From sequence record OK905446.1: a DNA stretch of 64,000 nt; one strand, given 5' to 3'. Position numbers and translations under genes: made by a program. Positions 46,299-52,867 of the stretch are shown here, piece after piece. Within the stretch, counting starts at the first letter, position 1, and each line of letters starts with the position of its first letter. The notes below the pieces were generated by a model, which saw nothing but the letters and a program-made list of their open reading frames with translations, did no database searches and was not told the origin of the DNA.

Positions 46299-46754
46299 AT
46301 GGCATATTCTGGCAAATACGTTCCAACAAACAAATCAAAGTACAAAGGCAATTATCAGAAGATCGAGTACCGAAGCTCATGGGAATTGTCTTTCATGCGC
46401 TGGTGTGACAACAACCCGCATGTTGTTCGTTGGAATTCTGAAGAAATCGTTATACCTTACGTTAGCTCGGCTGATGGGGGTAAAAAACGTAGATATTTCA
46501 TGGACTTTTTTGTAGAACTATCTGACGGAAGAAAGTTCATTTTTGAAATCAAACCACACAAAGAAACGATCCCACCTGAGAAGCCACAGCGGCTGACTGA
46601 GAAGGCAAAAAAGAGACTCTTGCACGAGGTTTACACATACAGAGTAAATCAAGACAAATGGACTGCTGCGATTAAATTTGCGAAGCAAAAGGGATGGACG
46701 TTTCGAGTGTTAACCGAACACGGTCTTAGAAAATTAATAGGACTTAGAGTATGA
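46299..46754 (+). CDS. gp4: head completion protein (TnsA-like nuclease fold)
   Basis: MAYSGKY.PTNKSKYKG, YRSSWE, WNSEEIVIPY, RRYFMDF, EIKP. Confidence 0.95.
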   Translation: MAYSGKYVPTNKSKYKGNYQKIEYRSSWELSFMRWCDNNPHVVRWNSEEIVIPYVSSADGGKKRRYFMDFFVELSDGRKFIFEIKPHKETIPPEKPQRLTEKAKKRLLHEVYTYRVNQDKWTAAIKFAKQKGWTFRVLTEHGLRKLIGLRV

Positions 46755-47155
46755 TTAGTGATTATCTAGATGATGCATGGATTGATGAACGAGCATATCA
46801 TGTACCCGAGGCGGATTTAGCCGTTACTCTTGAGTACGCAAAAGAGAACGGGGTAAATAAGACTGCTGGTCTTTCATCTGAACAAGCACTTGAAATGTGG
46901 GCAAATGATGATTATAAAAATTATCAAATAGCTAGACGTGCAGAATATATGCACACCGAAGAATATAAAGAAAAGATCAGCAATGCAAATCGCGGGAAGA
47001 CTCGTTCAGAGAAATCTAAGGCTGCATATCGAAAGGCGGCTAGTTCTAGACCGAAGTCGGCTTGCCCACATTGTGGTAAGCTATACGCAAAGCCAAATAT
47101 GGCTCAACACGAGCCTAGTTGTAGACGAAAACACAGCGAGGTAGAACATGGCTAG
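46751..47155 (+). CDS. NUMOD3/zinc-finger protein, homing-endonuclease-related
   Basis: EEYKEKISNANRGKTRSEKSK (NUMOD3-like) and CPHCGK...H...C; no GIY-YIG/HNH motif seen. Confidence 0.6.
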   Translation: MISDYLDDAWIDERAYHVPEADLAVTLEYAKENGVNKTAGLSSEQALEMWANDDYKNYQIARRAEYMHTEEYKEKISNANRGKTRSEKSKAAYRKAASSRPKSACPHCGKLYAKPNMAQHEPSCRRKHSEVEHG

Positions 47156-47744
47156 AACAGATAGATCACCGAAGAAAAAAGAGAGTCTTCTTGCCAGCTT
47201 TCAAGCTCAAACTCATGAGCTTGGTCGTACTCCAATTGCAAAGAATCAGCGAAAATCACTAGCGTGGTTTAAAAAGCGAGTTCATGACGCAATTCGTAGT
47301 CGAAAAGTGCAAGTTCCACACAAAGGCAACATGTATGTTTTCGCGTACGACGCAAAGACCAAACATCAATTACCGTATTGGGATAAGTTCCCATGTATCA
47401 TATGCTTGGGGCAACAAAAGGGATATATGCTTGGTTTGAACTTGCATTACATCCCGCCCAAAGATCGCGAGAAATTTTTAACTACATTACTAAGATTCGC
47501 AAACACGAAAACAGTTAGCAACTCCACGAAGCTTATGATTGACTGGGGTCGAGTGAAAAACATTAAATTCAGTAAACATATGGTGAAATTGTACATTCTA
47601 AAGCGTATCAAAGGTTCGCTTGAAGAAGTTAAACCACATGACTGGTACAACGTTATTCACATGCCATTGCAACAATTCGTTGCCAAAAATGGTCGCAACA
47701 TTTCTGCTGTTCGTGCGTACGATGATCGTTATAGAAGGAGATAA
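47148..47744 (+). CDS. gp2: DNA end protector protein
   Basis: YVFAYDAKTKHQLPYWDKFP, GLNLHYIPP. Confidence 0.93.
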   Translation: MARTDRSPKKKESLLASFQAQTHELGRTPIAKNQRKSLAWFKKRVHDAIRSRKVQVPHKGNMYVFAYDAKTKHQLPYWDKFPCIICLGQQKGYMLGLNLHYIPPKDREKFLTTLLRFANTKTVSNSTKLMIDWGRVKNIKFSKHMVKLYILKRIKGSLEEVKPHDWYNVIHMPLQQFVAKNGRNISAVRAYDDRYRRR

Positions 47745-47747
47745 CGA

Positions 47748-48494
47748 ATGGCAATCGGAATAGATGTTAAGAAGTTCTTATCTCACATCACGAAGAACGA
47801 CTTAGCAAGACAAAACTTGTATGCGGTGCGATTTGCATCGCTGCAAGATACAGCAAAGCAAGTCATGAATACCGGCGAATCATTCTTGAACGCCGATTTC
47901 AGTGACATTAAGGGTGTCGGTGTGCAAGATGCCCTTGCTTCAACTGCTTCGCTATTCGGATCTGGGTTTGAGTTTGAACGAAATATAGGGATGATGGTTA
48001 AATCAGTCAACATCCCAGGTTCGTCGTACGAAACAGACGTTGATAAGACACGTCGCAGACCTCATCACGTAGTCAAAGCAAAGACCGATGAGACGGTCAC
48101 TATGTCGTTGTATTTGTCACCAACTCACCCAGAGCGTAAGATGCTGCTAGGTTGGTTTAAGCAAATCTACGCGAATGATTCAGCACAAGTTGGATTCTTC
48201 GCTAACTATGCTCGTACAATCGAGATCTACACGTACGACCGAAATGCAGACATGGTAACAATGACCAGTCTTAAAAATGCGTTTCCGATTCGTGTTGGTG
48301 GGGTTCAACTAGGTTACGAAAACAACAACGCGGTCGCTGAATTTGAAGTTGAATTTGTGTATGAAAGTGCATCATATATGACTGAAGATTTATCAAGCAC
48401 AGTCTCGGATGCGTTGGGTATCACTCAGAACTTCGAGAAAACATATAACAGCTTTTTCAATACAGGCACTGAATTGATTTCAGGTCTATTCTAA
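47748..48494 (+). CDS. gp54: baseplate tail tube initiator
   Basis: DLARQNLYAV, VKSVNIPG, AFPIRVGGVQLGYENNNAVAEFEVEFVY. Confidence 0.85.
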   Translation: MAIGIDVKKFLSHITKNDLARQNLYAVRFASLQDTAKQVMNTGESFLNADFSDIKGVGVQDALASTASLFGSGFEFERNIGMMVKSVNIPGSSYETDVDKTRRRPHHVVKAKTDETVTMSLYLSPTHPERKMLLGWFKQIYANDSAQVGFFANYARTIEIYTYDRNADMVTMTSLKNAFPIRVGGVQLGYENNNAVAEFEVEFVYESASYMTEDLSSTVSDALGITQNFEKTYNSFFNTGTELISGLF

Positions 48495-48504
48495 GGTAAA
48501 CATC

Positions 48505-49353
48505 ATGACCAAAACATTTGATATTAGCGTACTAGCTGCGCCACAATATACTGTAAAACTACCATCAACTGGTGAAGAAATTAAACTGCGTGCAATGCTT
48601 GCAAAAGAGCACAAAGCATTGCTAATCGCGAATGAATCCGATGAAAAGATAGACGCAATCGAACAATGTCTTGAAAACTGTATTGTTTCTGACATCAACA
48701 TGGACGAACTGACTGTTGGTGATGCTGAATATCTGTTCTTGCACATGTACATGAACAGCAATGGTGTGACTAGCATTCAAGCCGAATACAACTGCTGTGC
48801 AGATAAGCCAGAAGAAGAGCTTCAGAAACTTTCTCAAGAGGAAGAAGCAGAGCTTGAAAAATCTGCCGATGACATCTTCGCTGAGATCATGAATCAATCA
48901 GACGAAGAAGCAATCGAATCTGTGTTTGCACCAGAAAAACATTTGTGTGGTGAACGAATTACAACAAACATCGACTTGAAATCTGCATTCGTACCGGAAT
49001 ATAAAGGCGAAGACTTTGTTAAAGTCAACCCTCGCGTTGTAATCAAGTTGCAACACCCAACTATTCGCGTTTACGAGAACAACGACCCGAATACACCACA
49101 AGGGTTGTTCAACATTGCAGTTGCTGCGATTAAAGAAGTTCACGTTGGCGATACTGTGTACACCAAAGAAGAATTGGAAGCTCAGAATCAACTAGTCAAC
49201 ATCATGGGCGAACTCGACACGGCAGCATTCAAGAAAGTTCAAACGTTTGTTGATTCTGTACCGCGTGTGACATCACACATCGACGTTAAATGTCCGAAGT
49301 GTGGCAACCACGAGAAAGTAACCCTACGAGGCATCGAAGATTTTTTCGTATAA
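48505..49353 (+). CDS. gp26: baseplate hub assembly protein
   Basis: VKLPSTGEEIKLR, two Cys clusters, CPKCG...LRGIEDFF. Confidence 0.88.
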   Translation: MTKTFDISVLAAPQYTVKLPSTGEEIKLRAMLAKEHKALLIANESDEKIDAIEQCLENCIVSDINMDELTVGDAEYLFLHMYMNSNGVTSIQAEYNCCADKPEEELQKLSQEEEAELEKSADDIFAEIMNQSDEEAIESVFAPEKHLCGERITTNIDLKSAFVPEYKGEDFVKVNPRVVIKLQHPTIRVYENNDPNTPQGLFNIAVAAIKEVHVGDTVYTKEELEAQNQLVNIMGELDTAAFKKVQTFVDSVPRVTSHIDVKCPKCGNHEKVTLRGIEDFFV

Positions 49354-49520
49354 TGCTCGGTAGATACTCACTTGAAGAGTATTACAAGGAAAATTTTGCC
49401 ATGATCACTCATGGCAATTTCTCTCTTCACGATTTAGAAACAATGGTTCTATTCGAGCGTGAAATCTATGCCGCACAGCTTATACATTACATCCAAGAAA
49501 AGAATAAGGAACAACAATAA
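49353..49520 (+). CDS. gp51: gp51-like C-terminal module (standalone or frameshift fusion)
   Basis: EEYYKENFAMITHGNFSLHDLETMVLFEREIY resembles C-terminus of T4 gp51; TAATG overlap; upstream T TTT TTC heptamer. Confidence 0.8.
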   Translation: MLGRYSLEEYYKENFAMITHGNFSLHDLETMVLFEREIYAAQLIHYIQEKNKEQQ

Positions 49521-51478
49521 TGGCGGCTGACGACAAGAAGATGAATGAGATAATCGGAAGATTAGATCATATCATTCTTCAACAAGAAGACCGACCTGAA
49601 GTTTATACGATGCAGCGCGTGGCTCGTCATATCAGTAACATTGATATTACAACCACGTCGATGCTCGAAACTATGCAGTCGGTGTTTAAAACAAATGAAA
49701 AAGCAGTAGCACAGCAAAAAGGTCTGTTTCAGCGTGTTATTGAAAACTTTGATCAGACATCTAATAAAGTTCGTGCTGCGATCATATCACTTACTGATGT
49801 TATCAAAACGACGTTAGACTTTAAAGGCCATCTGAATCGAATCAACCGCGGCATTCAAGAAATGCACTTGACTGCAAAAATGCAGTTCGCACGTATGCAG
49901 GAGGGGTTTACTCGTTGGTTTGAACGTCTGATTTTCAGAGTCAATGACATGAAGCGCGTCATAGGGCTTCAGAAGACGGCTGCTGATGATTTGAATAGTT
50001 TCTTGACGAACGGTGCGGGTAACAACTCGCCGCTTACTGTGGGCTTTATAAGCGCGTTGTACAAGAAGATATTTGCGTATCAAGTTGTAACCGAAACACG
50101 AAATCGTAAAACTGAACTTCATCGTTACAAAGAGAACATGAAAGTTCAGCGCAACCAAGCAAAAGACTTGAAGCGAATTGCCACACATCTGGTCGGTCAG
50201 AAATTAGGTTGGATTGCTAAAGTATTCAAACTGTTTGGTGCATTTGTCACGTTTCTTGGCGGACAAGCAATACTTCTATCAACATCGTTAGCCAATGCTT
50301 CTATGGCAGCATCAAAATTCGGCGCACTAGGACGTATAGCATCAACGATCTTGCTCGGATTTGGTAAATTCGGTAAAGGAACGGGTAACATAATTCAAGC
50401 TCTAGCAACTGACATGTCAGGTACTGTTAAAGGCTGGATGATGTTCGTCGTGAAAAGACTGTTCTTAGGTCTAGGCCGAATGATCGGCATTATGCTAAAC
50501 CCAGTTGCGTTGATTGGTATGCTTGCAGGTTATGGTATTTACAAGCTATTCGAAGAAGAAATTGACCGAATTTTCGTAGCACTGAAAAGCATATTCTCAG
50601 ACCCCGAAAAACGAGCCGCATTGTTTGCAATGGTCTCGAATTGGTTTAATGGCGTAATTCAGAGCATTTCGAACTGGTTTGGCGGTGTCGGTGAGAGTAT
50701 TGAAGAAGCAATACCTGAAGGTGCAGTCGAAGGCGTAGTTGCTGGCTTCCAGAAGCTAACTTCGTTTGTTCAGAAAGCATTCAATATGTACGTGAACGCG
50801 ATTAACAGCGTGATTGCAAGTTTCTTGTCTATCCCTGACTCGTTCAGATTGCTTATGTTATCAATTCAGAACTTGATGTTAAACATCAAAGAAATGGCTG
50901 GTAGCATTATCGACTGGATCCCAGGTGTTGATAGACCAGAAATGCTAGGCAAAGACAAGCTATCGGCTGAACGAGGGAAGCTAGATGCCGACAAGTCAGA
51001 AGTTAACGCTAGACTGACTGAACGCTATCAAACTAACTACCTAGGGAAAGCTGGGGATGCAATCGCAGACGGTGCTAAGAACGCAGCACAGAGCGTTGTA
51101 GACGGTGCTAAGGGTGTGATGGATGCAGTTAAAGATCCAGCTAAACGTCTTGCGTCATCTGCCGAAACACTTGACAGATTCTTAGCTGCTGAAGTTGAGA
51201 AGAAGCAAATGGAAGAAGACGCCATTGTTGCTGCTGAGAGACAACGTATGATCGACGAAGGGATTATCAAGCCATTCCAAGAGATCAAGCGTTCAGTAAT
51301 CTTAGAAGCAGTCGCAGCGCGTGAAGCAGCATTCAGAGCAGCACAGCAATCGAAAGAAGTCGGTTCGAACTTTGTTAACAACGCTGTAAGCACAGTTCAG
51401 AATACAACGAACTTCACCAGACCATTAACTACAGGTGGCGAAGCTAAGATGCCAACTACAAGAGGTACGTTCAACTAA
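49520..51478 (+). CDS. gp29: tape measure/baseplate hub protein
   Basis: 652 aa helical protein with central hydrophobic segments; follows gp26/gp51. Confidence 0.75.
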   Translation: MAADDKKMNEIIGRLDHIILQQEDRPEVYTMQRVARHISNIDITTTSMLETMQSVFKTNEKAVAQQKGLFQRVIENFDQTSNKVRAAIISLTDVIKTTLDFKGHLNRINRGIQEMHLTAKMQFARMQEGFTRWFERLIFRVNDMKRVIGLQKTAADDLNSFLTNGAGNNSPLTVGFISALYKKIFAYQVVTETRNRKTELHRYKENMKVQRNQAKDLKRIATHLVGQKLGWIAKVFKLFGAFVTFLGGQAILLSTSLANASMAASKFGALGRIASTILLGFGKFGKGTGNIIQALATDMSGTVKGWMMFVVKRLFLGLGRMIGIMLNPVALIGMLAGYGIYKLFEEEIDRIFVALKSIFSDPEKRAALFAMVSNWFNGVIQSISNWFGGVGESIEEAIPEGAVEGVVAGFQKLTSFVQKAFNMYVNAINSVIASFLSIPDSFRLLMLSIQNLMLNIKEMAGSIIDWIPGVDRPEMLGKDKLSAERGKLDADKSEVNARLTERYQTNYLGKAGDAIADGAKNAAQSVVDGAKGVMDAVKDPAKRLASSAETLDRFLAAEVEKKQMEEDAIVAAERQRMIDEGIIKPFQEIKRSVILEAVAAREAAFRAAQQSKEVGSNFVNNAVSTVQNTTNFTRPLTTGGEAKMPTTRGTFN

Positions 51479-52008
51479 TGAAAAACTTGACGATGAAGAA
51501 TAACTTCCGAATCGACATACCAGACAACGGGGCAACGGAAACGTTTCAGTGGCAGATTCAAACTGCCACGATCCCGAGTGTTAATATGGAAATTGCAAGT
51601 ATAAGTCGTGGTTCAAAGTACGCCAAACTAGCTAACAACAACATAGCAGGTTCAGGCACTTCGTACGATGACTTATCAATTCAGTTTCTAGTCGATGAAG
51701 AAATGAGGACTTACGCTGAGTTATACAAGTGGTTAATCACTATGAATAACCCTATTGGTCCCAGTAACAGTGATGGTAAAGTTCCAGTAACTCTATTGCT
51801 ACATGTTCTAGACAATAACAAAGAAAAGACTGTTGCTACGTATCGCTTTATCAATGCGTTCCCGAAGTCATTAAGTGCAATCGAATGGAACTACACAGAA
51901 TCAGGTGACGTTGAAACAGTTACATGTGATGTTGAGTTTGAATACGCCTACTTTGAAATGGTTCATAAAGTAGATGGCAAAGAAGTAACAATCACACCCA
52001 TCGGCTAA
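51478..52008 (+). CDS. gp3: tail tube terminator
   Basis: NNFRIDIPD, QTATIPSV, YDDLSIQFLVDEEMRTYAELYKW, FINAFPKSLS. Confidence 0.92.
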   Translation: MKNLTMKNNFRIDIPDNGATETFQWQIQTATIPSVNMEIASISRGSKYAKLANNNIAGSGTSYDDLSIQFLVDEEMRTYAELYKWLITMNNPIGPSNSDGKVPVTLLLHVLDNNKEKTVATYRFINAFPKSLSAIEWNYTESGDVETVTCDVEFEYAYFEMVHKVDGKEVTITPIG

Positions 52009-52228: not shown

Positions 52229-52867
52229 ATGATAATAGGAATCAATGGGCAGAAGCGATCTGGCAAAGATACAGTCGCTGACATCCTGAAAGAATCTCAT
52301 AGTGATAATGCTTATGTTTACAAATTTGCAGACCCGATTAAAGAGGGATTGTACATTGGACTAAAAGAATACGGCTATGAGTACGCAGACATCGACGGGC
52401 AGAATGACTTTGATAGAGAAATCCCGACATTCACTTTCGATGAAGCTGTAGAACTTGTATTAACCTGCTGTGAATATGCAAACGTAGACGCTGATTATGA
52501 TTATGTCTACTACTCTCTGCTGCCTCACACGACACTTTTCAGCATCCGTGACTTACTACAAATGACTGGCACTGATGTTGCTCGTTCGCTTGATGATCAG
52601 CACTGGATCAATTATGCACGCAATAAATACAATGAGCTAGTGTTTAACAATCCCGAATTGGTGTTTATAATAACGGATGTTCGTTTTGAAAACGAATTGC
52701 ATTTAGTACAAGAGCTTGGTGGCACGATGCTTCAAGTAACCAGAAACGGTTCGCTTGCATCTAATCACATTAGCGATACTGAGTTGGGTCATATTAGCGA
52801 CGCAATTCAAATAGACAATAACGGTTCTCTTGAAGAACTGCATGAAAAAATCAACAATTTATTTTAA
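52229..52867 (+). CDS. gp1: deoxynucleoside monophosphate kinase
   Basis: IIGINGQKRSGKDT P-loop, FADPIK, RDLLQMTGTD, IITDVRFENE. Confidence 0.93.
   Translation: MIIGINGQKRSGKDTVADILKESHSDNAYVYKFADPIKEGLYIGLKEYGYEYADIDGQNDFDREIPTFTFDEAVELVLTCCEYANVDADYDYVYYSLLPHTTLFSIRDLLQMTGTDVARSLDDQHWINYARNKYNELVFNNPELVFIITDVRFENELHLVQELGGTMLQVTRNGSLASNHISDTELGHISDAIQIDNNGSLEELHEKINNLF

Follow-up and report, generated by a model that had tools for sequence, protein, structure and literature searches.

In the 64,000-nucleotide stretch of sequence record OK905446.1 analysed here (the window, one strand, numbered from its first letter), the gp26-like baseplate hub assembly gene very probably carries a programmed −1 ribosomal frameshift site, at which translation would yield both gp26 and a longer protein made of gp26 joined to a module of the type found at the C-terminus of T4 gp51. 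The 3.8-kb stretch around the gp26 locus matches Vibrio phage VS1 with 100% identity, phages VS2 and QD01 with 98–99%, and phages KVP40 and nt-1 with about 80%; the window is from Vibrio phage VS1, a KVP40-like member of the T4-related 'schizo-T-even' group. Our analysis establishes the sequence anatomy of the site, the homology of both protein parts, and the conservation of the shift site at the nucleotide level. The features of the locus, including its open reading frames (ORFs), are as follows.

48505–49353, plus strand: gp26-like baseplate hub assembly protein, 282 amino acids, the 0-frame short product (PF12322, phrog_150)
49328–49331, plus strand: Shine–Dalgarno (SD)-like GAGG, a possible upstream stimulator (sequence)
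49341–49347, plus strand: slippery heptamer T_TTT_TTC in the gp26 phase, the proposed −1 shift site (sequence, conservation)
49347–49520, plus strand: −1-frame extension, a 57-codon Gp51_C-type module plus stop (phrog_634)
49353–49520, plus strand: stand-alone 55-amino-acid ORF in the same frame, beginning at the ATG of TAATG (phrog_634 'baseplate hub assembly catalyst', 3.1e-20)
49520–51478, plus strand: 652-amino-acid putative tape measure protein (phrog_15654, function unknown; weak phrog_167 and phrog_17020)

The 3′ end of the gp26 gene reads GAT TTT TTC GTA TAA, with the 0-frame stop at 49351–49353. Within it, T_TTT_TTC fits the slippery pattern X_XXY_YYZ in the phase of gp26, and is separated from the upstream GAGG by a 9-nucleotide spacer. 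Starting from the heptamer, the −1 frame reads FFRIMLGRYSLEEYYKENF... and stays open until its stop at 49518–49520, while an ATG at 49353 overlaps the gp26 stop as TAATG (49351–49355). The heptamer, the GAGG, and a −1 frame open to 49520 are present just as a preliminary description of the window had claimed.

By itself, the heptamer is unremarkable. The ORFs of at least 100 amino acids in the window contain 55 in-frame XXXYYYZ heptamers, the window has 19 runs of six or more T and 24 runs of six or more A, and there are 0.42 extra runs per gp26 gene; the case that can be made from the window alone is modest. These counts favour a reading without recoding, in which an ordinary small gene occupies the −1 frame and the heptamer arose by chance in an AT-rich genome. 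Of the 55, the gp26 heptamer alone has a −1 frame that continues for 40 codons or more past the 0-frame stop, and its conservation in relatives places it far beyond chance. In particular, its position, phase, and sequence are conserved in every examined junction outside the Tevenvirinae and Ackermannviridae, and a start codon for a separate gene is missing in about half of the lineages. The sampled clades span several phage families, and this distribution contradicts a reading without recoding, which we regard as extremely unlikely.

More than 200 phage records contain homologues of the module, as do 540 confirmed IMG/VR stretches. The loci compared come from GenBank phages and from 80 IMG/VR contigs, mostly of marine phages, whose modules are 42–53% identical to the VS1 module; 87 usable related sources yielded 78 distinct junction sequences. 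In each of the 87 sources, a gp26-like ORF about 200–290 codons long has the module in its −1 frame. Furthermore, T_TTT_TTN is found in the gp26 phase in 78 of 78 junctions (the last base is C in 64, A in 10, and T in 4), and the 0-frame stop follows the heptamer at a distance of no more than one codon in 74 of them.

The codons around the site are consistent with selection acting on the T-run. The codon before the run is AGT, TCT, GAT, GCT, AAT, GGT, or CAT, specifying six different amino acids with a third base that is T throughout, while the T-ending share for those amino acids elsewhere in the same genes is 32–80%. The first Phe codon is TTT in every junction, compared with 73% elsewhere in the same genes, and the second slippery codon can switch to Leu (TTA or TTG) and leave the T-run intact. 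Judged by this codon usage, the constraint is at the nucleotide level, beyond what the protein requires.

The start codons of the module show no comparable conservation. Between the nearest upstream −1-frame stop and six codons beyond the heptamer, 44 of the 78 junctions contain no ATG, GTG, or TTG. In Vibrio phage D479, the nearest outgroup, ACG replaces the VS1 ATG and −1-frame stops adjoin the heptamer, and in phage Melnitz-2 stops likewise close the −1 frame right up to the heptamer. These junctions argue against the alternative that translation only terminates and reinitiates, in which ribosomes would restart at TAATG to make a free 55-amino-acid Gp51_C peptide and the T-run would merely be conserved Phe-Phe codons. 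Database annotations, including those of KVP40, QD01, and nt-1, call a separate small ORF, as this alternative would have it. Yet the T-run survives the amino-acid changes and the seven different preceding codons described above, and no SD sequence lies 5–10 nucleotides from the ATG at 49353. Reinitiation also leaves unexplained why the module is constantly in the −1 frame and begins exactly at the run. We therefore consider reinitiation alone improbable. The preliminary description had proposed a programmed −1 frameshift with TAATG reinitiation as its alternative, and the comparison of relatives supports the frameshift: the heptamer is kept in every junction and in the eight further phages described below, and the TAATG or ATG start is missing in 44 of the 78 junctions, the reverse of the pattern that the description had named as refuting it.

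Apparent in-frame fusions of gp26 and the module in metagenomes (P0011 and P0019) were given no weight. They lie in pilon-polished long-read contigs in which gp26 is itself fragmented, and are probably homopolymer errors. The ENA contigs with such fusions are L103 (2178–3079) and L104 (1899–2800), where gp26 is split into two to four called genes. Error-prone long-read contigs of this kind could mislead surveys of the gp26 T-run.

The 0-frame product belongs to the T4 gp26 family: the VS1 protein matches PF12322 (T4_baseplate) with an E-value of 3.6e-48 and a score of 164.6 bits (cut-off 24.5) over profile positions 2–218 of 219, and matches phrog_150 with an E-value of 2.5e-53. The module matches phrog_634 at profile positions 59–113, and Pfam family PF28602 (Gp51_C) is listed for its homologues. 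The preliminary description had likened T4 gp51 to a gp26-like domain followed by the module, and the T4-type gp51 of phage RB3 is built in this way. Specifically, its residues 1–201 cover the whole T4_baseplate profile, a C-terminal segment of 48 residues aligns to the module, and its last 50 residues match the same region of phrog_634 (positions 56–103, 8.8e-09). On the phrog_150 profile, VS1 gp26 ends at position 232, which is where the C-terminal 50 residues of gp51 begin. Across its domain boundary gp51 reads ...DIVDVFKLLVNPDEIFTFY...; VS1 supplies the two sides separately, as ...GIEDFFV-stop in frame 0 and FFRIMLGRYSLEEYY... in frame −1, and both pieces align to gp51 with no gap at Phe-Phe. 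Because the gp26 part and the module match the corresponding parts of gp51, the shifted product, comprising gp26 residues 1–281 and 57 further residues (about 338 amino acids), would have the gp51 architecture.

AlphaFold 2 (AF2) models of gp26 and of the module have predicted local distance difference test (pLDDT) scores of 86 and 91, respectively, and the module is modelled as three helices. A fold search of the PDB found nothing significant for the gp26 model (best E 0.9) and no significant neighbour for the module model. Sequence search of the PDB gave no match for gp26 or the 652-amino-acid ORF, NCBIfam gave nothing useful, and no Pfam or NCBIfam chaperone family was matched. The BFVD matches of the gp26 model are gp26- or gp51-type proteins of large myoviruses or unnamed proteins, none of them named a tail assembly chaperone. 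As a separate observation, gp26 residues C97, C148, C263, and C266 are nearly invariant in an alignment of Vibrio-phage gp26 proteins, with a C-P-x-C-G motif just before the C-terminus, and T4-type gp51 has C-C where VS1 gp26 has CPxCG; the four cysteines may form a zinc site.

Beyond these junctions, the heptamer recurs in eight phages that belong to other T4-like lineages: Aeromonas phages 65 and phiAS5, Cronobacter phage LPCS28, Stenotrophomonas phage Moby, Pseudomonas phage pf16, Sinorhizobium phage phiM12, Pelagibacter phage HTVC008M, and Rhizobium phage RHph_N34, the last with the variant T_TTT_TTG. The −1-frame modules of these distant phages match phrog_634 at the same profile positions and align with the VS1 module. 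In phages 65 and LPCS28 the module has no start codon, and in LPCS28 it is unannotated.

The Tevenvirinae (RB3, S16, and Cronus) have two separate, divergently transcribed genes, gene 26 (208 amino acids) and gene 51 (249 amino acids). Genes 26 and 25 lie on one strand and genes 51, 27, 28, and 29 on the other, such that gene 51 heads an operon ending in the tape measure gene. The gp26 of the Tevenvirinae retains Phe-Phe, but its codons there are TTC TTT and the preceding codon has G or A as its last base, which abolishes the slippery run. As far as these sequences tell, the Tevenvirinae are a natural control, in which the slippery run was lost where two genes exist. That they hold Phe-Phe without the T-run is a further point against reinitiation as the sole explanation; on this and on the codon evidence we reject the idea that the T-run is a mere reflection of conserved Phe-Phe.

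The C-terminus of Tevenvirinae gp26 offers a separate observation. In three loci (L092, 3468–4094; L097, 2962–3591; L098, 2992–3618) the protein ends in ...EFF, followed by E, K, or R, then L, then L or I, and the stop. These three extra residues resemble the start of the −1-frame continuation elsewhere (R-I/L-...), and T-even gp26 may descend from a copy in which both frames had already merged and which was later shortened.

An SD-like tetramer is found within 22 nucleotides upstream of the heptamer in 60 of the 78 junctions, compared with 11% of background windows, and its spacer is mostly 10–11 nucleotides. The Glu codon at the motif is GAG in 44 of 59 cases, compared with 28% elsewhere in the same genes. 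A similar arrangement is known from Escherichia coli dnaX, in which an SD-like sequence about 10 nucleotides upstream and a strong downstream hairpin accompany a shift that truncates the protein. The SD-like sequence upstream of the gp26 heptamer would be a stimulator of the same kind. Unlike dnaX, the gp26 site has no conserved downstream hairpin, and its shift would extend the protein.

The enrichment of SD-like sequences favours a ribosomal mechanism over transcriptional slippage, in which the polymerase would stutter on the T6 run and add a base to some mRNAs, thereby placing the fusion in one frame. Homopolymer runs can cause such slippage, its end product would be identical, and in four of the 78 junctions the run is T8. 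The other 74 runs consist of exactly six T, mostly ended by C. Transcriptional slippage in bacteria, as in insertion sequence (IS) elements and Thermus dnaX, usually needs about 8–9 bases, more than the run offers. Moreover, selection for slippage should lengthen the run, yet what is held is the ribosomal X_XXY_YYZ pattern and its phase. On this evidence, we judge transcriptional slippage very unlikely.

In two cyanophages, P-SSM2 (L005, 2480–2520) and S-PM2 (L007, 2480–2530), a strong hairpin lies 5–9 nucleotides past the heptamer, with z-scores of −3.4 and −4.0 against shuffled sequences; it is not present in VS1 or in many other loci. Stimulators may differ between lineages. The near-constant 0-frame stop one codon past the site may matter as well, or may simply mark the domain boundary.

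Several observations weigh against a programmed frameshift at this locus, or narrow what can be said of it. The loci are phylogenetically related, so that raw counts such as 78 of 78 overstate the independence of the junctions. The best fold of the VS1 RNA downstream of the heptamer has a z-score of −0.13, and we claim no structure there; RNAalifold found no consensus downstream structure in an alignment of 67 junctions, and an Rfam scan of 49150–49650 found no match. TAATG is present not only in VS1 but also in KVP40, nt-1, and QD01, and reinitiation at TAATG in VS1 may be an extra source of the free module. In the Ackermannviridae (Vi01, Kamild, D507, and GR28A), the module is again in the −1 frame, but all that is left of the heptamer is T_TTC, and there is usually an ATG, a pattern that favours reinitiation. 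In some phages, therefore, the module can probably work, or at least be made, unfused. Finally, that ribosomes slip here, how often and with which stimulators they do so, and that the products act as chaperones are inferred rather than observed.

The Ackermannviridae also include a variant of their own. In Salmonella phage Vi01 (L093, 4229–4399), the stretch encoding the module lacks annotation and contains none of ATG, GTG, and TTG; the module may be expressed from an unusual start or through slippage of a single tRNA on T_TTC. The T_TTC remnant stands in place of the heptamer in the Ackermannviridae loci L105, L106, and L099 as well.

In the mechanism that we propose for the programmed −1 frameshift, most ribosomes would stay in frame across T_TTT_TTC and incorporate a single further residue before terminating at 49351–49353, which gives the 282-amino-acid gp26. 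A fraction would slip back by one base with two tRNA-Phe on TTT and TTC, re-pairing on TTT TTT, as in the standard model, in which both tRNAs slip at once from TTT-TTC to TTT-TTT. The shifted ribosomes would translate 57 codons up to 49520 and produce a protein of about 338 amino acids, with the T4_baseplate domain followed by the Gp51_C module. Likely helpers would be the SD-like GAGG 9 nucleotides upstream, as in dnaX, and the 0-frame stop one codon beyond the site; a weak local hairpin would be a possible one. Without being part of the virion, the short and long forms could then jointly chaperone the assembly of the central hub and tape measure, like lambda G and GT, and the Tevenvirinae would make the same two forms from separate genes 26 and 51.

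The order of the genes around the site, namely a tube-family paralogue, gp26, the module, and the 652-amino-acid ORF, mirrors lambda V-G-T-H, with the tube-family gene at 47748–48494 in the position of V. The 652-amino-acid ORF has weak matches to phrog_167 (tape measure, 2.2e-04) and phrog_17020, and the syntenic proteins of HTVC008M and phiM12 match several tape-measure phrogs at 1e-05 to 1e-12 and are so named by their depositors. By its position, its size, and these weak profile matches, the ORF encodes a putative tape measure protein. Profile–profile comparison of its family with T4-type gp29 gave a probability of 1.9%, that is, no detectable similarity, and we claim no orthology; a tblastn search with T4-type gp29 returned no Vibrio phage or cyanophage among the matches listed, so another tape measure protein would be needed in those phages. 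The preliminary description had placed the shift site just upstream of the tape measure gene, and the gene order fits that placement, with the tape-measure identity of the neighbour being putative on the grounds just given.

Two further observations concern this neighbour. The module stop overlaps the start of the 652-amino-acid ORF at 49520 in a second TAATG (49518–49522), which suggests that translation of the putative tape measure gene is coupled to that of the chaperone frame. In Melnitz-2 (L006, 2710–3039), phiM12 (L094, 4364–4783), HTVC008M (L095, 4373–4705), and RHph_N34 (L107, 1518–1937), the module is separated from the large putative tape measure gene by an additional ORF of about 110–140 amino acids, which is absent from the VS1 window and from cyanophages.

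Xu, Hendrix, and Duda reportedly described in 2004 a conserved frameshift upstream of tape measure genes, that of the lambda G/GT tail assembly chaperones. In lambda, a −1 shift near the 3′ end of gene G adds a second domain. The VS1 locus resembles this system in that it lies between tube-family and presumed tape measure genes and would by itself make both a short and a long form. It differs in that gp26, about twice the size of G, has no sequence or fold relationship to it, and homology to known G-type chaperones was rejected after searches that gave no PDB sequence, PDB fold, or chaperone-family match. By comparison of the two systems, gp26 and the module are analogous to G/GT in layout and role but not homologous to it. 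In T4, the counterparts gp26 and gp51 count as assembly factors and are not established components of the virion: both are listed as hub assembly chaperones, gp51 being required for assembly and not found in the particle, and the presence of gp26 in the hub being disputed (PMC3004832). They are tied to hub assembly, and are not shown to bind tape measure and tube.

In the T4 pair we find true homologues, such that the 0-frame product of VS1 corresponds to gp26, and its 0-frame part plus module reproduce the domain order of gp51; the Tevenvirinae differ in having two divergent genes without a slippery run, where the single VS1 locus would yield both. The E/E+E′ system of phage P2 is a tail chaperone frameshift in a myovirus, at a slip site of the T_TTT_TTG type, the heptamer that Rhizobium phage RHph_N34 also carries. 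P2 shares the contractile tail, while its protein family and genome context are unrelated. The G/GT analogues of phage SPP1, 17.5 and 17.5*, are reported to use the heptamer UUUUUUC, which is also that of VS1, in a putative −1 shift within a chaperone gene (PMC6316719). SPP1 is a siphovirus with unrelated proteins, and its shift is also a bioinformatic prediction.

The preliminary description had further suggested that T4 gp26 and gp51 are G/GT analogues fixed by duplication. The existence of two genes in the Tevenvirinae and the loss of the run there fit this suggestion, which stands as analogy and does not extend to homology with G/GT. We lean towards the view that gp26/gp51 is the T4-superfamily counterpart of G/GT on an unrelated fold, and that an ancestral one-gene frameshift was split by duplication in the Tevenvirinae, T4 among them. 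The frameshift state would then survive in the non-Tevenvirinae Straboviridae, the Kyanoviridae, the Pootjesviridae, and several unassigned T4-like genera.

The annotation of KVP40 already likens the small ORF to the C-terminus of T4 gp51, and Pfam now includes the Gp51_C family. We found no record annotated with a frameshift at the gp26/module locus, and the full-text literature searched yielded no description of a gp26/gp51 frameshift, although subscription journals could hold an earlier mention. To our knowledge, no tail-chaperone frameshift has been described in T4-related phages. If the frameshift is real, the conserved tail-chaperone frameshift of long-tailed phages extends to T4-related phages, the same expression logic has evolved on an unrelated fold, and the Tevenvirinae provide a natural case of gene duplication replacing a recoding site. 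Hundreds of genomes in the databases would then be mis-annotated, with either a stand-alone 'gp51' mini-ORF or none, and correcting the annotation of the locus would affect several hundred of them, among which are genomes of abundant marine cyanophages and pelagiphages.

The locus lies within a cluster of head and tail genes, the other features of which are listed below.

46299–46754, plus strand: gp4, head completion
46751–47155, plus strand: small NUMOD3-type ORF
47148–47744, plus strand: gp2
47748–48494, plus strand: tail-tube-family paralogue, gp19/gp54-like (Pfam Phage_T4_gp19, 2.1e-06; phrog_45 'tail tube', 5.4e-39)
51478–52008, plus strand: gp3-like tail tube terminator or sheath stabiliser, which closes the cluster (Phage_T4_gp19, 3.1e-08; phrog_45)
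52229–52867, plus strand: deoxynucleoside monophosphate (dNMP) kinase

In the records of relatives, the protein encoded at 47748–48494 is labelled tail tube or baseplate-tail tube initiator, and the product of 51478–52008 is named gp3. The ORF at 46751–47155, located between gp4 and gp2, encodes 134 amino acids with a NUMOD3 motif and matches to homing-endonuclease phrogs. QD01 shares 98% identity across the stretch searched, and its gp4 adjoins gp2 with no NUMOD3-type ORF between them, and in Aeromonas phage 65 a homing endonuclease is also found at the gp4/gp2 junction.

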